Below are positions 1 through 60,070 of a stretch of 64,000 nt of DNA, one piece after another. The stretch is from Selaginella moellendorffii (Eukaryota; Plantae; Lycopodiophyta), in assembly GCF_000143415.4 (NCBI RefSeq), contig NW_003314302.1, forward strand, positions 146,151 to 210,150, given 5' to 3'. The translations under genes and the position numbers were made by a program. The first letter of the stretch is position 1; each line of letters opens with the position of its first letter. The notes under the pieces are model-generated. The model was not told the origin of the DNA and ran no database searches. It saw only the letters and a program-made list of their open reading frames with translations.

Positions 1-49
1 GAGTTTTGTTTCCAAACTCTAGAGGAGAAAAACAAAGAGAAAGCTTTAC

Positions 50-1271
50 CTCGCCTGGAAATGCTTTAGACATTGCACGTAGAATGTTGTGCTTGTTTTG
101 ATCTCCATGGAGCTTCCTTTTCTCCACGAAGTTGATCATGATCCGGCCTCCCGGTTTCAATCTCTTCCGGAGTTTCAACCATGTCTCCACCTGGAAGAAC
201 TAAAACTATGAGATCACAAAGACCATAACGTTGTTTCTACCTCGTGCAGCTCTGGCAAAACCTCCGCGTTTGAGAACAAATCCACGACAATGCCTGGACA
301 AGAGTCACAGCTTCTGAGAAAAGATGATAAAAGAACTTGCATGTCACAGGACCTGCAAATCCTCCGTCGGGATCACTGGCATCCGAGAAAGCGTCTCCGA
401 TATGAATTTTCAGTCCGCCACCGTGTTCATTCTCGCCTTCCAGCTCGGACAGGCCAAGATATTCTCTCGCCTTTTCAATCAGCTGCATGAAAACTGTGAG
501 CTCCGGGGATGGAAAATGCAAGAGACTCACGAGTTCATCGATCTCAAAGCCTATCAATTCTCGCTGGGGCCACAAATGGAGCAGTAATCGAGCAGCAGTG
601 CCACCTCCCTGTTGAAACAAAGTTTTTTGTAAGAAGAAGCACACGAAAAGTTCTTACCAATCCGAGAATTGCAATGGGACCTTCCGGAATGATCGGTGGA
701 AGCGAGGAGAACTCATCCTAAAGAACACACATGAGCTTACTTAAGAACAAAGAAAGGAAAGAGAATTTCTTTTACCCAGTAGTATCCAACCCACATCGAA
801 TCCTCCATGTAAACGCTGTGAGGATCTCCTGCATTGACAAAGATCCTAGCACGACTCGAGTCACACAAGAAATCCATGAACAAAGAAAGCGATAATCCCT
901 AGCCTACCTGTTTGATCGAGCAGCAGCAATCTTGCCCCAGCGAAATCAGCCAGCGAATCCCTCGGCAGCTCCACGATCGCAATGGCATTGTAGTCACTCT
1001 CCAAGAACGCGAGAATCGCTGGGCCCGCGGCGTCCAAATCTTCCTCGATCCATCCCTCCTCCAAGGAAATCCCATCCCTCCCTGGATTGGCCGCAAGAAC
1101 AAGGCGGCATCCACGCGGATTGATCCCCGGCAAGCATCGCAATGGAGGATTCACTGCCCTAAGAAGCTCCACGGGCAGCTGTGAGAGAGGGAACCCGGCT
1201 ATGGCGATCCCATCGCACGAGGAAGGGAAAAGAGGCCACCAGACAAAGCAAGCAAATATTGCGAGTAGCAT
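50..1271 (-). CDS. SAM-dependent methyltransferase, spermidine-synthase-like plant family (probably organellar); multi-exon, 3' end beyond window start
   Basis: Exons read ESDYNAIAIVE..ARLLLLDQT / DPHSVY..WVGYYW / DEFSSLPPIIPEGPIAILGL / GGGTAARLLLHLWP..FEIDEL / LIEKAREYLGLSELE..IHIGDA / IVVDLFS / WLKLRKRLKPGGRIMINF with short GT-AG introns; LGLGGG SAM-binding motif spans a splice junction. Start codon uncertain. Confidence 0.85.
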
Positions 1272-1328
1272 GTTAACTGGTTTTAGGGCTCTTGTTCTTT
1301 GCGACTCTTGGATTCGATGAAGAGAGGA

Positions 1329-1913
1329 ATGGAATCCGAGCCGCCGAGGTGAAATCGCGCGAAGCCGTGTGAATTTCTTGCGAAATCTCTCGTCTGTGTG
1401 CCTGCCAGGTACTGCTGGAGATTTGTTTGCGATGATCCGGCGCGACAAGCTCCCCCTGTCGTTCGCCAGGAGCAATCCAGCCTCGACACGCCCCAATCCG
1501 TCGCTGACAACTCGAAATCCTTCCCGATGGAAGCTCCCGAGGCCGCATTTCCGCGAGAAATCCCGCACAGAGATGAGAGCTCGTACAGGGAGGAAAGATT
1601 TCTGCCGATGAGGGACGATCAAGGGTCGATGCTCATGGTGGGGCGATTCGGCGGCGCCAGATTCCACGTGTGGAAGATGAGGATGCAAATGCTGCTGGTG
1701 CTACACGATCAGTGGGGCGTGGTGAGCGGATCGGAGGCCCGGCCGGGAGAATCCGCGAGGAAGGAAGATTGCCTAGAGTTTGAGAAGAAGGACGCGAGAG
1801 CGCGAGCGAATATTTTGCTCCATCTCGAGGACAGGCAGCTAATGCAGGTGTGGCACACAACGTCAGCGAAGCAGGCATGGGATCTCCTGGGCGACATGTA
1901 CATGGCGTTCTAG
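1329..1913 (+). CDS. Small (~174 aa) spliced protein consisting of a Ty1/copia Gag N-terminal region (DUF4219 + UBN2/Retrotran_gag_2-like)
   Basis: GRFGGARFHVWKMRMQMLL..DQWGVVSG..EKKDARARANILLHLED..SAKQAWDLL matches the copia Gag N-terminus. Predicted exon1 1329-1348, 60-nt GT-AG intron 1349-1408, exon2 1409-1913 stay in frame. No pol or LTR adjacent. Confidence 0.6.
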
Positions 1914-2024
1914 GAGTCCGGGATTTAGGGTTTTAGCGCCTTGATAGATAGAAAGAATGATAATGGCGCGTCCACAGCTAGCACCAAGGATGATCTTTGT
2001 CGTTGTCACCGACAGTAGAGTTTA

Positions 2025-2199: not shown

Positions 2200-3300
2200 A
2201 AGCTTAACTCACACAAGCGGCTGTTTGTGAGCTCCATCTCCGCGTGCTCAAACGTGGAAGAAGGCAGGAAAATCTACACGGGTTCTCTTACAATGCTCTC
2301 AGCTTGTCAAGAAATTATCAAGAGATTATCTAGGGCTCAAGCATCTGGGAATGCACCGGCTGATCGCCGGGAAAGCATCGCAAGAAGTGCCGGATAAAAT
2401 TCAAAAATCTGGCTTAGAAAGTGCTGCTATTCTGTAAAGCGCTTGTAGCTCAGGGGATAGAGCGTCTGTTTCCGGAGCAGAAAGTCACAGGTTCGATATC
2501 TGTCAGGAGTGTGATACAGTTGATCTGGTGGAGCATAGCTGGATCGACTGCATGTTCTCCTTTCCTTGTGTGTTGTGATTATTCCTTTCTTCTCTTGGTG
2601 TCTTTGGACAAGATGGATCGGAGCAGATTAACCATCTTTAGGTAAAGAGTTTCATGATACAGTAGGATGTATAAACGGGCCATGATGGTTGGTTGAGACT
2701 GATGAAAGAATGGTGGCATTTGGAGAATCCTCATTGATTTGTGCTAGTGAGTCAAGAGGAGCTCTTTAGATCGAGCAGCAGCTGAGATTGTGCGAGATTT
2801 GGCTCACGGCAGGCGGATGCACCGTGTCATCCAGCCTCTGATACAAGCGCTTTGTTTCAATCTCCTCTATAGGTGTGCCAGAAGTGCCGGAGCATCAAAG
2901 ACGCCACCGATTTGGTCAGATCGATTGCATAATGTAACGATTACTACATTTGCCTTAAACGGGCATCTGGAGGTCGCAAATACACTCTTTCTTTCCGATG
3001 CTCAGCAAAAGGTGATCTCCTGGAACACAGGGCTTGCATTGTATGGAAAGCCCGGTCCGATGCTTTGTAATATTCACCAACACACCATTGTGTCTTGGAC
3101 CAGTATCATGCACATATAAGTCCCATGGGGCATCTTGACGAGGCTGTTGCTCTCAGTTTATTTGGAAGCCAAGAGTTACAAGCAGCTCCAAAGCATTCAT
3201 TCTTCCTTGCTAATCGAACAAGTCTTTACCTATGGTGTCAAAGCAAACATGCTTGGAATCATATCTGTATTGAGAATCACAGCTCTCTAGATTAGCAGAA
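2200..3300 (+). pseudogene. Highly degenerate PLS-class PPR fragments
   Basis: Fragments SISACSNVEEGRKIY, RDLAHGRRMH, FALNGHLEVANTLF, VISWNT, IVSWTSIM, broken by stops and deletions. Confidence 0.55.
2439..2511 (+). tRNA. tRNA-Arg(CCG), possibly a pseudogene
   Basis: 73-nt cloverleaf GCGCTTG..GCTC-AGGGGATA-GAGC..TCTGT-TTCCGGA-GCAGA..ACAGG-TTCGATA-TCTGT-CAGGAGT-G. G3-A70 mismatch, G53-T61, no clear T-run terminator. Confidence 0.8.
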
Positions 3301-3503
3301 AAAATGGGAAAGCAAAGGAGGCTGCCTCCCATAGATAAAGCTCCATATGGGCACAAACTCTCACAAATGCTCGCACAGACTTTAGAATGCGAAGTGTTGG
3401 TCACTGAATGGTCATAGCTAGCTGCTTATGTAGATGACCATGAGGAAAGAGGGTCGACCAAAAGATAAGCAGCAAAAATGGCTCCTTCTCGAAAGCTTGT
3501 GCT

Positions 3504-3728
3504 TGCATTGCTCCCTTTATCCCTGCTCATCACTGCTACTTTTGCTGCTGAAAATGAAGGTAGTAGTTTTCTTCTCCAAAATCGGGCACCATATTGCTAG
3601 GGTAACTTGGTCGTCCAGTGCAGATCTGTGAATCCAATTCAAACACTAAGATCATTGAGATTCTGGAGAAGAAAACCACTACCTTCATTTTCAGCAGCAA
3701 AAATAGCAGTGATATAAGAGGAGATGCA
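3504..3728. ncRNA. miRNA-precursor-like fold-back
   Basis: 55-bp arms 3529-3583 and 3659-3713 are reverse complements with 3 mismatches; ~75-nt loop; weaker lower stem 3504-3520 / 3714-3728. Confidence 0.5.
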
Positions 3729-8737: not shown

Positions 8738-10876
8738 CCAAAGGTGTTAACATTTGGAAGATACAAAGGCCAGCCTCTCGGTTTTCTTCCAGCGAACTAT
8801 CTGCAATGGATGACACAGGAGCTAGACAACCACTGGAATGGCTTGGCCAGGCAAGTTCTATCAGAAAGAAAAGAAGGAGAAAGCTCGAGCACTCAAGAAG
8901 AACGTTTCTGCTCCGCAGAGTTCTCGCAAAGTTGGATCCATGGTTCTCACTTCGGGAAGTACAAAGGCCAAGCGCTGGGTTCTCTCCCGGACGTGTACCT
9001 GGAATGGATGGCGAACAACAGCACACACACTGGGGGAGACACGGGAGAGAGTTTCTGGATAGCAAGCACGGTGGTGATCGAGAAGTTCGCATCGCCCAAG
9101 AACAGGATGGATCGATCGCGTTGAAGAAGCAGATCCTGGCTTGTCAAGAGAGGAGAGGCCTCGAGGAAGCTAAGCGGATCCACGCGCGGGTGAAAGCCAG
9201 CGCCTATCGCGACGATCGATACATCGCCAATCTTCTCATGGACATGTTTGGAGCTTGCGGGAGCGCGGACACGGCGCTGGAGATCTTTGAGAAGATCCAG
9301 GCGCCCAACATCTTCTCCTGGAACATCATCCTCAAGGTTGTCACGCAGAAGAATGGATGCGATCCAGAGGCGTGGAAGATTTTCGAGAAGATCCCGGAGA
9401 AGGAGAAGAATGCCGTGTCGTGGAACATCATCCTCGCCGCGCTCGCGGCCGAGAAGGGGAATTTGCGCAAAGTGGAGGAGTTTTTCTACGAGAGGATGCC
9501 CGTCAAGGATGTGTTCTCCTGGACTACACTACTCAATGCCTACATAACAAATGGGCGGTTTGACAAGGCCAGGGAGATCTTTGTGAGCCTCGATGACGAG
9601 AATGTAAACGCCGCTACGTGGAACACGATGATAGAAGGATATGCCCAGGCAGAGGATATGCTGCAAGCCAGAAAAATGTTCGATAGCATGCCCGAAAACA
9701 GCGTTGTGTCGTGGAATTTGATGATTACATAATGTGAAAGAAGCAAGAAACTTTTTTGAAAAAGTGAAGGAGAAAAACCAGGTGACTTCGAATGCGATGC
9801 TTGCTGTATATGCCCACAACGGGCATCTGCAGGAAGCAAAAACCTTGTTTGCTGAGATGCCAAAGAAAGATGGCGCTTCGTGGACGTGTTTGCTGCAAGC
9901 ACACTGCCATGCAGGGACAACCCATGATTCGGAGGAGATCCTGCAGAAGATGCCGTTTGAAAAGACTATTGTGCACTGGACGATGCTGCTGGATGCCCAT
10001 GCAAAGGCCGGGAATCTCGATCGAGCGAGGGAAGTTTACGACCAAACGCCGGATCCGGGTGCGATCACGAGGAATGCCATGTTCCACACAGAGGATACAT
10101 GCACGAGGCAAATGCGCTGTTCGAGCAAGTTGGAGACAAGGTTGACGCCGCGACAAAGAACATCATGATCCTGGCGCATGGATCGTCTGGGAACTTGGAT
10201 CACTACGACTGCATGGTTGGAGCTTTCGGAGCCGCAAAGAAGATGGAAGACGCAAGAGAGCTCATTGTAGCATGCCTTTCGAAGCTGATGCTCGAGTGTG
10301 GATGACTCTACTTGCTTGCTGCCGGAGGCACTTGGACACGGAGAATGGCAAGCTTTGCGCAGAGAGATTGTTTGTTTTGGATCCAGAGAACGTTTCACCG
10401 TACAAGATCCTCGTGGAGATCTACAGCCAAACCGGGAGAGAGAACGACATTGCTGGATTGAAGAAGATGGTGAGAGACAAAGGTCTCCACAAGCTCGAGG
10501 CCGAGAGCCTGATCCAGATCGATGGCATCACGCACAAGTTTCGAGTGGGAACACTGCGCATCCGAGCATCAAGAAAGTTCGCAAGGAAGTTGCCAGGTTG
10601 ACGAAGCTGATGGAGAGAGATCATGGGTATAAACACGAGAACTTGGGATGGAGCAAGTGTGGAGGCGGTGTTCACAGTGAGAAGCTTGCAATCGCGTACG
10701 CACTGTGTGAGAAGAGCCGTGAGATCTCGCTCGTGAATAACTTGAGGATGTGCGGTGACTACCATACTTCTGCAAAGATGATCTCCAGCGTGGTGAAGAG
10801 GAAGATCACGGTACGTGACATGCAAAGGCTGCATGGTTTTGAGAATGATGTTTGCTCTTGCGCGGATACCTGGTAA
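8738..10876 (+). pseudogene. PLS-E-DYW PPR with N-terminal tandem FGxYKG..LP..YL.W (DUF3820/ExoX-C-like) repeats, copy 1
   Basis: PLS motifs (NIFSWN, NAVSWN, DVFSWT), E domain (WMTLLACCRRH..LDPENVSPY), DYW region HSEKLA..NLRMCGDYH..CSCADTW*; stop at 9730-9732 and several frameshifts. Confidence 0.9.
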
Positions 10877-28900: not shown

Positions 28901-29597
28901 CGGACTCGGACTCGGACTCGGACTCGGACTCGGACTCGGACTCGGACTCGGACTCGGACTCGGGCTCGGACTCGGGCTCGGGCTCGGTCTCGGCCTCGGC
29001 CTTGGTCTCGGTCTCGGTCCCGATCTCGATCTCGGTCTCGGTCTCGGTCCCGGTCTCGGTCCCGGTCTCGGTCTCGACTTCGGACTCCATCTCGGACTCC
29101 ATCTCGGACTCCATCTCGGACTCCACCTCGGGTCCATCTCGGACTCCATCTCGGACTCCATCTCGGGTCCATCTTGGGTCCATCTCGGACTCCATCTCGG
29201 ACTCCATCTCGGACTCCACCTCGGGTCCATCTCGGACTCCATCTCGGGTCCCATCTCGGACTCCACCTCAGGTCCATCTCGGGTCCATCTCGGACTCCAT
29301 CTCGGACTCCATCTCGGGTCCATCTCGGACTCCATCTCGGACTCCATTTCGGTCCATCTTGGGTCCACCTCGGACTCCATCTCGGACTCCATCTCGGGTC
29401 CATCTCGGACTCCACTTCGGACTCCAACTCGGGTCCATCTCGGGTCCACCTCAGACTCCACTTCGGACTCCAACTCGGGTCCATCTCGGACTCCACTTCG
29501 GACTCCAACTCGGGTCCATCTCGGACTCCACTTCGGACTCCAACTCGAGTCCATCTCGGACTCCACTTCGGACTCCAACTCGAGTCCATCTCGGACA
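28901..29597. repeat. Compound minisatellite in the 3' LTR: (GGACTC)n, (GGTCTC)n, 12-mer CTCGGACTCCAT, 11-mer CTCGGGTCCAT
   Basis: Seen directly. Confidence 0.97.
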
Positions 29598-34893: not shown

Positions 34894-35590
34894 CGGACTC
34901 GGACTCGGACTCGGACTCGGACTCGGACTCGGACTCGGACTCGGACTCGGACTCGGGCTCGGACTCGGGCTCGGGCTCGGTCTCGGCCTCGGCCTTGGTC
35001 TCGGTCTCGGTCCCGATCTCGATCTCGGTCTCGGTCTCGGTCCCGGTCTCGGTCCCGGTCTCGGTCTCGACTTCGGACTCCATCTCGGACTCCATCTCGG
35101 ACTCCATCTCGGACTCCACCTCGGGTCCATCTCGGACTCCATCTCGGACTCCATCTCGGGTCCATCTTGGGTCCATCTCGGACTCCATCTCGGACTCCAT
35201 CTCGGACTCCACCTCGGGTCCATCTCGGACTCCATCTCGGGTCCCATCTCGGACTCCACCTCAGGTCCATCTCGGGTCCATCTCGGACTCCATCTCGGAC
35301 TCCATCTCGGGTCCATCTCGGACTCCATCTCGGACTCCATTTCGGTCCATCTTGGGTCCACCTCGGACTCCATCTCGGACTCCATCTCGGGTCCATCTCG
35401 GACTCCACTTCGGACTCCAACTCGGGTCCATCTCGGGTCCACCTCAGACTCCACTTCGGACTCCAACTCGGGTCCATCTCGGACTCCACTTCGGACTCCA
35501 ACTCGGGTCCATCTCGGACTCCACTTCGGACTCCAACTCGAGTCCATCTCGGACTCCACTTCGGACTCCAACTCGAGTCCATCTCGGACA
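34894..35590. repeat. Same compound minisatellite in the 5' LTR
   Basis: Apparently identical array at offset +5993. Confidence 0.97.
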
Positions 35591-40130: not shown

Positions 40131-40894
40131 GGAGCATTCCAACCGCCTCGTTGCAACTTGATTGCGATCCACCCTGTGAAAAGAACAAAACAGACCATTT
40201 CTAGGATAAGAAATTCGATGGCAGTTTCCAAGTTCTGTGCATCGTCTGTGCTTTAATACCCAGCAGAAACATTCAAGCTTGTCAATCCAACTTGTCCTTG
40301 ACTACCATATTATTATTATAGCCACAAAAGATTTAAATTTAATGTAATTTTACAGTTCCAGCATGACCAAATACAAATACTACCTTTAAGGGATTGGAAA
40401 TGATCAGAAGAAACTCAAACGATTGGAAGTGAATGTCGTCTAGAGTGAGACTACATCATTTGCTCCAGCTTGTCTTGTAGAAGAAACTTCTAGGGACCAA
40501 GCAAGGCCTGTCCAAGTCAACAAATAAATATGTTTTTGAGAACTCCTAGCTTTGTCCCGGACCCTACGGCCGAGGTGAAAGCTCTCAAGACCAAAAGTTT
40601 CAACCATGGCTCTGCCTGGAAGAACTCAAACTGTGAGATTGTACATAGCTTTCACAAAGGGTGTTTTAAAGGTGGGCGAAGCAAACTCAGGAGACAACTC
40701 AGTGACCATATAGAGGTGGATAGGGAGGAACACCAAGGAGAGGAAGAGAGAACACCTGAGCCCTGTTTGATTCTGTCAGTTGGATGCTTCCACCCCGGGA
40801 GCAAAATATTTGCTCATGCTCTTGTGTCTTTCTTCTCAAACTCCAAGTGGATTCTCCTTTGATCCGCACACCACACCCCATTGATAGTATAGCC

Positions 40895-41025
40895 CATTTG
40901 CATCCTCATCTTCCAGACGTGAAATCTGGCACTGCTGAATCGCTCCACCCTTGCTCATTTTGCATCAGGGGAAATCTTTCCCTCAGGAACTTCGATCTGG
41001 GAGGATTTTGAGTTGTCAGCAACGT
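40895..41025 (-). pseudogene. Third, deleted remnant of the Gag-like gene at 1329-1913
   Basis: catttgcatcctcatcttcca..aatcgc..atttTgagttgtcagc matches the reverse complement of 1503-1691. Confidence 0.75.
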
Positions 41026-50993: not shown

Positions 50994-51067
50994 GGCCTAT
51001 TAGCTCAGCTGGTCAGAGCGTGGTGCTAATAACGCCAAGGTCGCAGGTTCGAGACCTGCATGGGCCA
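50994..51067 (+). tRNA. tRNA-Ile(AAT)
   Basis: Canonical 74-nt plant cloverleaf GGCCTATTAGCTCAGCTGGTCAGAGCGTGGTGCTAATAACGCCAAGGTCGCAGGTTCGAGACCTGCATGGGCCA, followed by TTTT. Confidence 0.97.
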
Positions 51068-53595: not shown

Positions 53596-55195
53596 TTATG
53601 CTTCCGGTTTCATGTCTCGGAGCCTTGTCCATGCCTCCTCGAAGTCTTCTGGAGGAGGACATGTGAAGTGAACGTACTTTTCTGTGGCAGGGTGCTCGAA
53701 CCTGAAAACGTTTATTAGCTCACGCAAATTTCTTATACGAAACCTCACCCGAGGCTATAGGCATGCAGACAAGGGCGACGAATGTCCGATGTGAACTCGT
53801 GAATCTTCTTTCGGCTGTTCGTTTTAGTCGCGCTTAGAGCGGAAAATAGATTCGAATTCGCTTTTCCCACTGTTCCTCCATAAACATCATCCCCAAGCAG
53901 CGGGAAACCCATGTAACGTGCATGAACTCTTATCTGGAAGGTTCAGTTTAGTATCAGAGCTCCTGAAATTAAAGAATACGAACTTGATGAGTTCTCCCTG
54001 TCTCCAGCTTCCACTGAACAAGAGCCACACCACCATTTGCGAGAACGTCTAGAACCTTGTACCTGAAATGATAATGAAATGGTGATACAAAAGAAACTCG
54101 TTGCGACATACCTGCTTGCAGCAAAACGCGCATTTCTGGCGGATGGAACAGTATCTGACGTCGTCATGCGTTTCCTATCTCGCGGATCACGAAGGATTTC
54201 AGCCTCAATGCGGCCGCTCGTCGTTGAAGGTGTACCACACGTAAGACTCAGATAGGTTCTTCGGACTTTCCGAGATTTAAATTGCTCGCTCAAACTCAGC
54301 TGGGACTGTTCATCCTGAAAATAACAATAACAAGGCATACTCAGCACCTGGTAACACAAGACGTGTCTTACCTTACTTTTGCAACGACGATGAGTCCACT
54401 GGTACCTTTGTCCAGTCTATGCACAATCCCAGGCCTTATCACCGGTCTCGGACCCCGAAATCTTGAAGGAGTCTCGCCTCTAACTTTGTGTACCTCGACT
54501 TCATCTTTCTCATAGTCTTGGTCTCCATTTTCACTCAGCTCCTCTCCTTCATCGTCATCGGATTCCTCGTCCATCATTACTGGAAGAGAAACCTCGACAG
54601 CAGGAAGGCCGCAGTGATGGAGGATAGCATTCACCAAAGTCCCACCGTAATGTCCTGGAGCCGGATGCACAACCTGTGAAAACTTGTATTTAGCCAGGTC
54701 CAAAGCGAAAGTCTCTCGACTACATACCATATCGGCAGCCTTGTTGACAACAATCACATGATCATCTTCATGAACAATGTCTAGCTGAATTTTCTCAGGA
54801 GTAGCTTCCAAAGGAGCAGCACCGCAGAGAGTACAGACAACTTCGTCACCACCAATGACAGGAAACGAAGGCTGCCAGAAATCCAAAGCTTAGCTAAAAA
54901 ACATGAAAGTGAAGTGCAAATGAGCTAGAAGAAAGCCTCGTACCTTGGTGATGGTTTTCCCATTGACAAGAGCAAGCCCCTTGCGAATGCTGTCTTGGAC
55001 GCGAGCTCGACTGGTATGAGGGAGCTGACCCGAAAGCCACACGTCGATTCTAGTGCTCACGGTCTCCTCCGGGATAGTGCCATGGTACTCGCCCAATGCG
55101 TGAGTTCCCCTGGCCAGAACTCTCGCTGGAACCGACGAAGAATTCCAGCCTCTACCACTGCGCCAAAGCGCTAGCTGTGGACGCGCCACTAGCAT
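53596..55195 (-). CDS. RluA/RluD-family RNA pseudouridine synthase with S4 domain (organellar), ~7 exons
   Basis: RIDVWLS..SRARVQDSIR, IVHEDDHVIVVNKAADMV/VHPAPGH..GTLVNA, RPGIVHRLDKGTSG, LETGRTHQ/IRVH, CLHAYSLG/FEHP; stop TAA 53596-53598. Confidence 0.93.
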
Positions 55196-55219
55196 TCTTT
55201 CTATCTATCCGGCCACCAG

Positions 55220-56380
55220 AACCCTAAATCCCAACATCTCGCCCAGGAGATCCCATCGTGTCGTGTGCCACACCTGCATTAGCTGCCTGTCCTCGAGATG
55301 GAGCAAAATATTCGCTCGTGCTCTCGCGTCCTTCTTCTCAAACTCCAGGCGATCTTCCTTCCTCGCGAATTCTCCTCCGATCCGCTCACCACGCCCCACT
55401 GATAGTGTAGCACCAGCAAGTTGCATCCGAACATTCGAACGCAACCGGATTCGAACGGGTATCGAACGTTTAATACCCGTTTAGCTTTTTTTCGAACGGG
55501 TATAATGGTTTTCAGTTTTTTTCGACCCCTGATTTTACGGGTTTTTCCGAACCCTGATTTTACATGAACCCTAATCCTAAGTAAAAGAAAGCATATTCTT
55601 TAGGGTTTTTAAAAATATTCTTGGTGTTTAAACGCCGTTTTAAACACCGTATTATACACGCGTTTTAAACGGCGTTTTTTATTAATCGTACCCGTTCGAA
55701 TGCAAGTATGCCAGCAACATTTGCATCCTCATCTTCCACACGTGGAATCTGGTGCCGCCGAATCGCTCCACCAAGAACATCGACCCTTGTTCGTCCCTCA
55801 TCGGGAGAAATCTTTCCTCCCTGTACGAGCTCTCATCTCTGTGCGGGATTTCTCGCGGAAATGCGGCCTCGGGAGCTTCGATCCGGGAGGATTTCGAGTT
55901 GTCAGATAAACAAGAGCCCTAAAACCAGACTAAAATTTTTCTTCTCTTTGTTTGTTCTATGTTCATGCTCATGTTTGTTTTTTAGGATGAGTTCTCCTCG
56001 CTTCCACTGGTCATTCCAGAAGACAATTCTCGGATTGGTAAGAACTTTTCGTGTTCTTCTTAGAAAACCTTCTTTGTTTCAAGAGCGAGCTGCTCGATCA
56101 CTGCTCCTGAGCGAGGATTGGAGATCGATGACATGAAATCGTGAGTCTCTTGCAATTCTCCATCGTGAATGCCACCCGAGCTCAATGGTTTTTCAGACGA
56201 AGGATTTGCAGGTGCCTTGAGACGAAAATTCTTTTATCATCTTTTCTCAGAAGCTGTGATTCTTGTCCAGGTGTTGTCGTGGATTTGTTCTCGAAAGCGG
56301 AAGTTTTGCCAGAGCTCCACACGTTCTTTATGAAAGCTATCTACAATCTCGTATCATGATCAACTTCCTGGAGAAAATGA
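55220..56380. pseudogene. Inverted, deleted copy of the Gag-like gene (-) and methyltransferase (+) from 1-1940
   Basis: EFEKKDARARANILLHLEDRQLMQVWHTT on minus; DEFSSLP, VVVDLFSKAEVLPELH, RIMINF on plus. Confidence 0.92.
55420..55710. mobile_element. hAT-like MITE (~290 bp)
   Basis: Absent from the paralog at 1681-1700; TIR GTTGCATCCGAAC / GTTCGAATGCAAG; duplicated target CCAGCAA(C) at 55413-55419 and 55711-55718. Confidence 0.8.
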
Positions 56381-56449: not shown

Positions 56450-59400
56450 GAACAAGCTCATGAGCTCACTGCTTAGTTTGATCCACTGTATAGGTGGAAA
56501 TCTTACAAACTTGGAGAACTACTTCTCAGTTTGTAGGGTGCCACTATCAACCAACTCACACACATAGTGAAATTGGACTTAATGTGCTTTGAGCAAGCAT
56601 GGTGGATGGGGTTCTTGGACATGGCAATACTACTTCAGTTGTCACACCAAGAAGTAGTGGGGCCAGCTTGTGCACATCCCAGCTCAGCAAGTAACTCCCA
56701 AGCCTAGACCACATCCCTGCTACCTAAGTGCAATGTACTGCACTTTTGCACTAGAAAGTGCCACCACAAATTATCGCTTGGAGCCCCACGTGATGGCACC
56801 TCCTGAGAAGGAAAGGCAAATGCCAGAAGTCGAGTGATGGCCTTTGTTATTTGCAAAGCTAACATCTATGTAACATGTCAATAATGCATCACCCCCCGAA
56901 TAAACAATGCTACGGTCCATGGTGCCTTGGAGGTTTTTGATGATATGCTTGGTAGCTTGCCAATGTATATTGGTTGGCAATATATTGTACTAACTAAGGC
57001 AATAGTCACTAGGGCAAGTCATCAAGGCCAAATATATGAGGCAACTGATGAGATGCCAATAGGGAGTCCCAGTGAGTAGAGGCTCACCAGACTGCTCAAC
57101 TATGAGGTCGATAGCACCAACAACTATCGAGGTATTGATGGGGTGACAATCACGCATACCAAACCAATCTAGCAAGACTTTTACCTTACATCATTGGCTA
57201 AGCATGTAGCCACCAGACTTAAGATCATGTGTGACCTCAAAGCCAAGAAAGTAAGAGTCTTGGCCAAGGCCCTTCATCTGGAATTTCTGGCTAAGAACAG
57301 CTTTTAGAGCAGCAATCGCATTAGTGTCATCACCCTTGATGGGCAAATCATCAATGTAGAGGGCCAAAATAAACATGCTTTCAGCATGACCATTCACATA
57401 CACATTGTGATTAGTATGGTAGCAATGAAAGCCTTGAGTGCATAGGATGGCATCAAATTTTTGATACTAAACATGGGAGCTCTGTTTTAAGCCATACAAA
57501 GCTTTCTGCAGTTGCTGTATAGTGTCACTAGAGGCAACATCATCCTCAAAACCAGGAGGTATATACATATAGATGTCCTCTTGCAAATCCCCATTCAAGA
57601 ATGTTGTTTTGACATCTATATGGTGGACTTGCCATTTGCGAGTAGCCACAAGTGCAAAAAGGGTATGGAGGCTAGCCATTTTTGCAACTAGTGAGAATGT
57701 TTCATCATAGTCAAGGCCATAAGTTTGGCAAAATCTGTGAATAACAAACCATGCCTTATAATATACCATCTTTCCCATACTTTTTGGATCCAAAACACGT
57801 CATCTTGGTGGAGTTGAATCCACTGGAACATAAGTGCCATTAACCTGAATGGAAGCAACTTCTTCCTCAATGGCTTCCATCCAAGATGGAACTTTAGGTC
57901 TTGAGACAGCCTCATCATAGATCATGGGGATGCTAATATCAACAAGGCCATAAAAGTCATCAAGCTCTATAGCATCTACTTTAGCATTTTCCCAGACTTT
58001 CTTCAATGAAGGCTGATGTTTCTAGGGGTGATCAAGAACTAGCATTGGATCAAGTATGCCACAACATCGACAAGGTGGTGGAGGTGTCGGAGGCCTATCC
58101 TTGATTGGAGGAGAGAATCAATTGATTCAGGCATGTCTAAAAATGGAGGATTCCCCAGTGGAATCTCTAGTGGCAACTCATGAATAGGATCTAAAGATGG
58201 AGGCAAAAGGAGATCATCTCCTATAAGTGGGATCAAAGGAACAAATCAAGTCTTCGAAATGAAGAAGGATCTTGAAGAACCTTTGTATGCATGGGAAAGT
58301 CATCTTTGTTGAATATGACATCTGTGCTTACAAGGGCCTTGTGAGATGCAAGATCCCACAACTTGTAAGCTTTTTTCCTGATGGTGTCATCCTGTGTATA
58401 TCCTATGAAGATGAATTTTGTACTTTTGGGATCTAACTTTTTCTGAATTTGATCAGAGGTATGCACGTATGCTGCACAACTAAAGACTTGAAAGTGGGAC
58501 AGATCAAGTATCCAAAATGCCTCAAGGGTTTTTCCATCCAAAGCAATTGTGCAAGGCAATTTTGGACATGCATTACTGTGGCTATAACCTCTTGCCAAAA
58601 TGTTTTATCAAGATGTGCATCAACTAACAAAGCACAAGTAACATTGACAATAATGCAATTCTTCCTTTCCGGAACATCATTTTGTTAGGGGGTGTAGTGG
58701 GCTATGGCTTGTGATCATATGCCTACATCATGACAGATGCCCTAAAGCTCATTGGTAAGGTATTCACCACTACCATCAACTCCAAAAACTTTTATCTTTT
58801 AGCCAAAAAGATTTTCAACATAGGCTTTATATGTTTGAATTGCAACAACTGCATCACTCTTGTGCATCAAGAAGTGGATGCATATCCAATGGCTATAATC
58901 ATCAATGAATGTGATGAAATACCTTACACCATTGTGGTTTGGCATGTTTACGGGGCCACAAAGATCAGAATGGACTAAGTCCAAAAGTCCAATTGCTTGA
59001 TGCTTGCTTAGTGAGAAATTTTTGGCAGTGATGTTTGCCTAGAATATAAGCTTCATTAAATATAAATGGAATATGTCAAAAATCCAATTGAGTAATAATA
59101 TCTTGGAATTTCATCCACTGAAGAGATTGGTAATGCACATGACTAAATCTCTTGTGCTAGAGCTCCACACTAGAATCTACCTCAATGGTTTGAAAGGCTT
59201 TAACTTGGTTGGCAGTAATGGTCTCGTACAAGTCTCCAATGCATGGCTCACGAAGCAACTATGTACCAAACATGTGAAAGTCGCTAAAATCAACCAAAGA
59301 GACTCCCTTTGCATTAAAGACTACCACTGCATCTTGATCACATATTTTAGTGACAAACATTAAGTTTTGTTGCAAGATAAAGATATGCATAGCACCATCA

Positions 59401-60070
59401 AACGTCATGGTCCTCCCATGATCAAGTGAGAGCTAAAATTGCCCAATGCTTTCTATGGGGATAGTGATATTGTCACATAAATGAACACCACATTTTCCAA
59501 CGCTCAGTTGGTAACACTAAAAAAGATTTTTCTTATTGCCTATAAGACTAGTATAACCAAAGTTTAGAAGCCACCTACTTGGTGTTCCAACTACCTCTAC
59601 ATTGTAGAGCTCTTTCTTAGCCTTATTTATTATAGCAATTCCATCACTCTTGAGTAGTTTGGCTTTTGCTGTTGTAGCTAGCTAGCTTTGAAGCTAACAG
59701 GCTTCAAAATAGTGCAATCTTGAGCCCAATAGCCCATCTCCAAGCAGTAGCACATTGATTCTTGGCAAGTCTAGGCTGGGTATGCCCAAATGCCATAGAA
59801 TTTTGCCCTTTTTAGGCATTAACAACGGCATGCAATTTTGCCACCTTGGCATCACCAAGAGCCTATAAAGCATATATAGCTTATGGCATTTCCACTCTCT
59901 CACTTTGCATGACCACAACATTACAAAGACTCCTCATGGTATCTGCCTAAGTCATCCTGGTTGGAGAAGCAAGCTCTAAACTACATTCTTCTAGTTAGTT
60001 GGTAGGGACTTGTAAAGATGTAACCTCTACTGCTCATTTGTGAGAGCATGGACCATTCTCGAGCTTATGA
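56450..60070 (-). mobile_element. Degenerate Ty1/copia gag-pol
   Basis: LVHSDLCGP..YFITFIDDYS, KKLDPKS.K.IFIGY, LDYDETFS.VAK, DVKTTFLNGDL.EDIYM, KALYGLKQS, LYIDD, STSG..AITWGSKR; many stops. Confidence 0.95.

Follow-up and report, generated by a model that had tools for sequence, protein, structure and literature searches.

Near the start of a 64,000-nucleotide (nt) stretch of Selaginella moellendorffii scaffold GL377606.1 (the window, whose position 1 corresponds to L001 position 8685) lies LOC112349699 (1317-1913, plus strand), a small gene model encoding a 178-amino-acid protein (XP_024540371.1) that an initial annotation had proposed as a host-recruited Ty1/copia Gag gene. Exon 1 (1317-1348, plus strand; placed by the NCBI model, by tblastn of XP_024540371.1 on the window and by direct reading) supplies MKRGMESEPP and 2 nt, and is followed by a 60-nt GT-AG intron (1349-1408, plus strand; donor GT 1349-1350, acceptor AG 1407-1408, as in the gene model) and by exon 2 (1409-1913, plus strand), in which 1410-1607 codes an N-terminal extension and the stop codon occupies 1911-1913. 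Residues 90-178 (1644-1910, plus strand) form the N-terminal lobe of a copia capsid as judged by PF14223, AlphaFold2, Foldseek and a profile comparison with PDB. The ORF (open reading frame) stands head-to-head with a methyltransferase, as the initial annotation observed; this neighbour is a spermine-synthase-like (methyltransferase-fold) gene whose first coding ORF (864-1271, minus strand) begins with an ATG at 1271-1269, 45 nt from the ATG at 1317, so that the two 5' ends overlap or share a promoter. Searches used exon 2 alone, exon 1 (32 nt) being too short, and whole-protein steps used XP_024540371.1.

The ORF at 1398-1913 (plus strand) runs for 171 codons without a stop, bearing out the description of a clean frame that holds only the N-terminal part of a copia Gag (PF14223 positions 1-73 of 172). 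The exon beginning MESEPPR was likewise correctly joined to it, in frame, through the 60-nt intron, and the NCBI protein has exactly this predicted intron; the ATG at 1329 chosen in that annotation is in frame within exon 1, with the NCBI model starting 12 nt upstream at ATG 1317. Reading of an unspliced transcript would end at the TGA at 1350-1352. From its model, LOC112349699 is probably a small spliced gene. The protein collection searched held no transcript-derived copies of the ORF, and exact look-ups there of six alternative-start versions (1398, 1410, 1527, 1608, 1629 and 1635) gave no match. Literature searches found no paper that names the locus or its protein accessions, and none relevant to copia gag domestication in Selaginella.

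Pfam Retrotran_gag_2 (PF14223) matched the ORF at E=1.4e-14 and 54.4 bits (cut-off 27). ORF residues 96-168 align to the first 73 of the 172 profile positions, and gag is thus represented by its N-terminal part alone. DUF4219, the second family put forward for checking, aligned below threshold (18.2 bits versus 27). An all-length HMMER scan of 1.84e9 representatives returned 409 relatives at E<=1e-3, all aligned by their N-termini. With 79 aligned sequences, AlphaFold2 predicted residues 90-178 as a confident helical bundle (pLDDT, the predicted local distance difference test, 94-98; helices at residues 96-109, 113-117, 129-148, 152-158 and 164-176) and residues 1-88 as disordered and devoid of secondary structure (pLDDT about 60). 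The Drosophila Copia capsid headed the Foldseek search of PDB (8vvw_A and 8s41_A; probability 1.0, root-mean-square deviation 2.3 A, 89 columns) and was its sole meaningful match, at 24% identity; structure prediction had been named as a check, and the confident fold as a Copia capsid N-lobe is its outcome. A profile of the relatives aligns to residues 4-249 of the Copia virus-like-particle protein (E=1.7e-44), which places the end of the ORF near Copia residue 88-90, at the boundary between the N- and C-lobes. Residues that are near-invariant in the family are kept (W99, L107, A142 and W168). The C-terminal lobe and the CCHC zinc knuckle are not in the ORF, and no further gag signal follows it in any frame. 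As modelled, the only portion of Gag that the ORF encodes is one complete capsid lobe, the N-lobe. The original wording, a capsid-domain protein, holds in that the product is gag-derived and predicted to fold, and narrows to a single lobe.

Six copies of this sequence are known: the window copy, three on scaffold GL377600.1 (L003_A, L003_B or copy B, and L002) and two more in the window (copies 2 and 3). GL377600.1 holds a syntenic counterpart of the locus, where the PPR, BBE, adh_short and spermine-synthase-like genes upstream follow one another as they do here. L003_A is intact, encodes a 179-amino-acid protein and shares 95.8% identity with window positions 1-1965; with 2.4% substitutions over 1965 nt and shared upstream synteny, it and the window copy are probably alleles on two haplotype scaffolds. 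In copy B (L003 17125-19040), a deletion shifts the frame of the leader and the lobe is interrupted by an in-frame stop; this copy also includes the downstream tRNA-Arg region. The L002 copy (10001-10462) is an inverted chimera that NCBI models as LOC112349051 (135 amino acids), in which antisense gag precedes sense leader with the same short intron; judged from this arrangement, its product is almost certainly not a real protein. The splice sites of the 60-nt intron are intact in every copy covering the region, and the NCBI models of both intact copies, XP_024540371.1 and the 179-amino-acid protein, share that intron.

Copies 2 and 3 had been recognized in the initial annotation as decayed, which they are; their spans, given there as 55220-55905 and 40895-41025, are corrected here to 55170-55909 and 40798-41024 (both minus strand). 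Copy 2 (leader and gag) is 5'-truncated, bears a 282-bp insertion and frameshifting deletions, and is flanked by methyltransferase-like gene fragments at 55931-56320. The older copy 3 has about 20% substitutions, large deletions, an in-frame stop and a CpG observed/expected ratio (o/e) of 0.42, and has a methyltransferase-like gene fragment beside it at 40596-40639. Copies carry adjoining pieces of the spermine-synthase-like gene and, in one case, the tRNA-Arg region as well. Since neighbour-gene pieces occur in every copy, these appear to be segmental duplicates rather than transposed copies of a transposable element (TE), and from their flanks the other copies are read as local segmental duplicates of a unit made up of the spermine-synthase-like gene and gag. 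The association of the two predates copy 3. The divergence of copy 3 was considered as proof of great age and is weakened as such, one third of its differences being CpG decay on its own branch.

Within copy 2, the splitting insertion (55429-55710) is AT-rich and MITE-like (resembling a miniature inverted-repeat transposable element), with repeated TTCGAACGGGTA-like motifs and a CpG o/e of 2.36. The tRNA-Arg(CCG) gene that belongs to the duplicated unit lies at 2439-2511 (plus strand), about 530 nt downstream of the ORF; its version in copy B on GL377600.1 shows 12 gap columns and 3 mismatches.

Residues 1-85 had no match outside S. moellendorffii in the scan of 1.84 billion representatives, and all other matches (at most 49% identical), among them full-length copia polyproteins of about 1300 amino acids, align their own residues 3-10 to query residues 83-87. 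The profile of relatives starts matching the window at 1605. Because the N-termini of relatives map to residues 83-87, the ancestral gag start was probably M78 (ATG 1608-1610, plus strand), an ATG retained in four of the five copies covering it (window, L003_A, L003_B and copy 2) and altered in copy 3. A 12-mer resembling a primer-binding site (PBS), TGGAATCCGAGC (1330-1341, plus strand), differs by 2 mismatches from the canonical plant copia tRNA-iMet PBS. It is not significant window-wide (7 matches found versus 5 expected) and lies in the expected place, on the same strand 267 nt upstream of the presumed gag ATG; by its position it is probably a relic PBS. We infer that 1330-1607 was probably the leader of a copia element, with the N-terminal residues a translated leader and the intron lying within it. 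The roughly 75 residues described as unrelated to Gag do lack relatives outside the species; they are probably the element's own leader and in that sense not unrelated.

No direct repeats resembling long terminal repeats (LTRs) were found around the ORF, nor terminal repeats bounding the unit, and no pol lies on the ORF strand within tens of kb. Across the 64-kb window, the two decayed copies apart, the profile of relatives detected gag at 1605-1904 only. What this leaves of an intact or autonomous Ty1/copia element (LTRs, PBS and downstream protease, integrase, reverse transcriptase and RNase H) is the PBS candidate, a 12-mer with 2 mismatches. The statement that no LTR, PBS, zinc knuckle or pol is nearby is accordingly borne out for LTR, zinc knuckle and pol, and amended for the PBS by the 12-mer at 1330-1341. 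A near-identical full-length copia element, which would have spoken for an ordinary TE, was found neither in the protein scans nor in the window, the nearest copia Gag being at most 49% identical.

The sole pol remnant in the window, a decayed Ty1/copia sequence at 56569-59576 (minus strand), spans integrase to RNase H with 29-37% identity to polyproteins and a CpG o/e of about 0.15. It abuts the gene fragment of copy 2 and has no detectable gag. We rejected it as donor of the copy 2 gag, both for that absence and because the order and orientation are unfit for one element.

As the initial annotation had it, the DNA is rich in GC and CpG, unlike the decayed TEs of the window (ORF GC 0.58 and CpG o/e 1.09, versus CpG o/e 0.03-0.3 in TE-rich window blocks). 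It is also apparently unmethylated, within the neighbour's CpG-rich 5' island. Telomere-type motifs bracket the ORF, with TTTAGGG at 1282-1288 and at 1924-1930 and (CCCTAAA)x3 at 2025-2045 in opposite orientation, the downstream group (1924-2045) lying just past the stop codon. The gag homology stops at the telomere-motif junction, and homology to the other haplotype stops at 1965. Either a telobox-like role in a promoter or a scar of rearrangement may account for these motifs.

The selection test compared the window copy with L003_A, from which it is separated over 1965 nt by 48 substitutions (2.4%) and five insertions or deletions (indels); P values said to come from an aware null refer to a spectrum- and CpG-aware null computed analytically. 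Exon 2 (1410-1889) holds 7 synonymous and 7 non-synonymous differences (omega, or dN/dS, 0.27; P=0.018; aware null P=0.029). Its folded lobe, the gag part, holds 6 and 2 (omega 0.09; P=0.002 for 1650-1889; aware null P=0.007 for 1644-1889), the stretch from M78 onward (1608-1889) 6 and 6 (aware null P=0.065), and the leader and N-terminal tail (1410-1649) 1 and 5 (omega 1.4; P=0.77). As controls, the other two plus-strand frames gave 3 and 2 synonymous and 10 and 12 non-synonymous differences (omega 1.1 and 2.2), and exon 1 of the neighbouring gene gave 4 synonymous and 6 non-synonymous (omega 0.5; P=0.23). The dN/dS check called for in the initial annotation, made here between the two intact S. 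moellendorffii copies, leans towards constraint for the ORF and its lobe, falls short of significance from M78 onward, and counts 14 differences in all. It is suggestive of purifying selection on the lobe within the species, judged on a few sites in a single pair that is probably allelic.

Between the intact copies we found an in-frame 12-nt indel in exon 1, a second in-frame indel of 12 nt, and one of 7 nt across the stop, and none between M78 and L171, where copy B has a stop and copy 2 an insertion and frameshifts. An internal ATG at 1527 is present only in the window allele. Between copies A and B, the gag part is 96.4% identical and the flanks 94-97% (gaps excluded). Over 1401-1600, the window and L003_A differ at 1 site where about 5 would be expected from the local average, and 1537-1607 is near-identical among four copies. 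The low divergence of 1401-1600 may reflect gene conversion or regulatory constraint.

We read the locus as a young, species-restricted, co-opted Gag fragment, a solo capsid N-lobe seated in a shared CpG-island promoter, and put the probability of this reading at roughly 0.45; a young copia-Gag co-option is plausible. Under it, the locus would be what is left of the 5' end of a dead Ty1/copia element (a PBS-like site, some 265 nt of leader and roughly the first 100 gag codons), lodged in opposite orientation against the start of the spermine-synthase-like gene and inside its CpG-rich, apparently unmethylated 5' island. The relic would then have become a species-restricted small gene, with a predicted transcript carrying a 60-nt intron in the former leader and presumably initiated from the promoter shared with the spermine-synthase-like gene. 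Translation may yield either 178 amino acids from the exon-1 ATG, the lobe then being preceded by 88 disordered residues, or about 101 amino acids from M78, and in either product the solo N-terminal lobe would be the sole folded part. Its likeliest activity would be to bind the Gag of related copia elements through the N-lobe contacts made in capsomers, which would make the lobe a decoy that disturbs particle assembly; peptide binding like that of the Arc N-lobe is a less likely alternative. That the whole chain holds, namely a lycophyte host gene born from a copia 5' end, with leader turned into intron and tail and the lobe countering related copia elements as a Gag decoy, is improbable.

For the claim of host recruitment, the gag derivation, the absence of TE hallmarks, the NCBI annotation and the synonymous-leaning differences speak in favour; those differences are few, and no orthologue was found, so the claim stands in part. 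Further points weigh against co-option. Four of the six known copies are broken, and because the window copy and L003_A are probably alleles, their joint intactness proves little, being near chance level. The selection test rests on 14 differences and on a post hoc partition of the ORF; from M78 onward the synonymous share (6 of 12, P=0.065) is not significant, and the N-terminal 77 residues evolve neutrally. Exon 1 differs between the intact copies by an in-frame 12-nt deletion in L003_A, where deletions of 12 nt and 7 nt also exchange the last 7 residues for 12 different ones and remove part of the last helix motif. Polarized by copy 3, the window allele is the more derived (I51M, E81D, F86L, L87M, E90G and R133C, plus 4-5 synonymous changes), with four of these replacements within residues 81-90, besides R133C. 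Long-term selection, considered from the comparison with copy B, did not hold up, the gag part being no better conserved than the flanks.

Other supports weaken as well. The high CpG of the ORF is attributable to the promoter island of the neighbouring gene, which lessens its worth as evidence of a gene, and broken copy 2 is equally CpG-rich (o/e about 1.0). The argument that an own intron marks a host gene is weakened: the intron probably lies inside the element's former leader, and it is modelled in the nonsense copy too. Nor is an NCBI model by itself proof of a gene or a function, given that a broken, rearranged copy also received a nonsense protein model. No orthologue turned up in any other species among 5.8e9 clusters (94-299 amino acids) or 1.84e9 representatives of any length, in databases whose coverage of lycophytes is uncertain; this speaks against co-option, with absence from a database itself being weak evidence. 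Finally, the C-lobe, through which known Ty1/copia Gag-derived restriction factors work, is not in the ORF.

Quite possibly the locus is instead a neutral relic, a young, truncated copia 5' fragment whose ORF was kept by chance in GC-rich, unmethylated promoter DNA, over-predicted by NCBI and transcribed only as a by-product of the neighbour's bidirectional promoter. Such a relic fits the restriction to one species, the breakage of most copies (one with the nonsense model LOC112349051), the 2.4% divergence of an intact pair whose termini differ at both ends, the neutral and disordered N-terminal 77 residues, the CpG o/e of about 1 in broken copy 2 and the lack of extra gag conservation relative to flanks in copy B, and by our estimate accident alone would produce 66 open codons at 58% GC with a probability of roughly 10%. 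It accounts less well for a synonymous excess confined to the gag frame (exon P about 0.03, fold P about 0.007; omega in the other frames 1.1-2.2), for a lobe free of indels in the intact copies although the region is indel-prone, for an ORF that ends at a structural domain boundary with near-invariant residues kept, and for a relic older than copy 3.

Exaptation in cis, in which the DNA or RNA (as promoter, 5' region or divergent or antisense transcript) controls the spermine-synthase-like gene, is unlikely. It would suit the head-to-head arrangement with 45 nt between start codons, the single difference among the 200 sites of 1401-1600 where about 5 are expected, the near-identity of the leader part 1537-1607 in four copies, the telobox-like motifs flanking the ORF and the duplication of gene and relic together as a whole unit. 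Purely non-coding constraint does not, however, predict changes at third codon positions in the gag frame, and the most conserved part of the leader may owe its state to recent gene conversion; the same stretch is also conserved in copies B and 2, where the adjoining gene is a truncated fragment. A still-mobile element, whether derived from copia and non-autonomous or travelling as a fragment within another transposon, is highly improbable, for although the sequence is multi-copy, has a PBS-like motif and lies in one copy (copy 2) beside the decayed pol at 56569-59576, the unit lacks bounding LTRs or terminal repeats, the copies carry pieces of the neighbouring host gene as segmental duplicates do, and the pol remnant is without detectable gag and sits wrongly with respect to copy 2 for a single element.

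Co-option of copia gag in plants is already documented, not in lycophytes there (PMC8321522), and LOC112349699 is a candidate further case. The closest precedents are Crtg9 and Crtg10, co-opted Ty1/copia gag genes of seed plants (Wang & Han 2021, PMC8321522), of which Crtg9 is reported to have undergone local or tandem duplication; Selaginella is not mentioned in that paper. Like them, LOC112349699 is Ty1/copia gag-derived, stands without LTRs and pol and shows suggestive signs of purifying selection; unlike them, with their orthologues above the family level, it occurs in one lycophyte only, is much younger and retains the N-lobe only.

Truncated Gags of the Ty1/copia superfamily expressed without pol are also known from Saccharomyces, as Ty1 p22/p18 (PMC8458377) and DRT2 (PMC13709905). 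DRT2 is a fixed chromosomal relic ORF at a rearrangement-prone locus, under purifying selection, that poisons the capsid lattice (PMC13709905). Both p22/p18 and Drt2 act through the C-lobe and share about 90% identity with their targets (PMC8458377, PMC13709905). Their chains (p22 and Drt2) correspond to the capsid C-terminal lobe at profile positions 121-189, whereas the ORF of LOC112349699 stops before it and so has no C-terminal lobe with a Dimer-1 interface, the mark of a Ty1-type restriction factor. Drt2 is 91.5% identical to its target Gag, whereas for LOC112349699 the protein scan found no Gag above 49%. The N-terminal half of the Drosophila Copia capsid (PDB 8vvw, 8s41) superposes on predicted residues 90-178. 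Capsid-forming Copia Gag combines the two lobes with a CCHC zinc knuckle, whereas the Selaginella protein has one lobe and by itself no C-lobe contacts. Arc, dArc, PEG10, RTL and PNMA are Ty3/gypsy-derived, keep both lobes, are deeply conserved and have known functions. With LOC112349699 they share only the general concept of a capsid-derived host gene, and in the profile search Arc matches the C-lobe region only (profile positions 91-246, E=4e-6).

If co-option is real, the locus would capture a very young case of gag recruitment soon after birth, still surrounded by broken duplicates, in which an element's leader was reused as intron and N-terminal tail. A further implication would be that a single capsid N-lobe can be retained alone, as opposed to the C-lobe in known Ty1-type restriction factors. 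Were the decoy activity borne out in addition, this would rank as the first described Gag-derived restriction factor of the N-lobe type and also as the first gag co-option from a lycophyte. If the gene is not real, it offers a caution that an intact ORF, high CpG and a gene model can all follow from a TE fragment in a promoter island.

The neighbouring spermine-synthase-like gene is itself incompletely modelled. From residue 44 onward, its ORF at 864-1271 is 52% identical in amino acids to an older paralogue; identity to the other haplotype is 95.6%, and there the counterpart gene model has a weak PF01564 Spermine_synth match. Pfam searches with the single minus-strand ORFs of the neighbour and with two downstream ORFs gave no matches. 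The NCBI model of this haplotype (209 amino acids; L001 8543-9492) ends at window position 808 and omits the 864-1271 ORF, which suggests that it is probably 5'-truncated.

Elsewhere in the window, a 55-nt inverted repeat (3529-3583 and 3659-3713; 95% complementary, 75 nt between arms) overlaps a signal-peptide-like ORF starting at 3478, and represents a local inverted duplication or a hairpin. Two identical tandem-repeat arrays built on CGGACT (28901-29596 and 34894-35589; units of 6, 12 and 35 nt), GC-rich and with strongly negative GC skew, lie 5993 bp apart and probably represent both LTRs of one large LTR retrotransposon. A tRNA-Ile(AAT) gene occupies 50994-51067.

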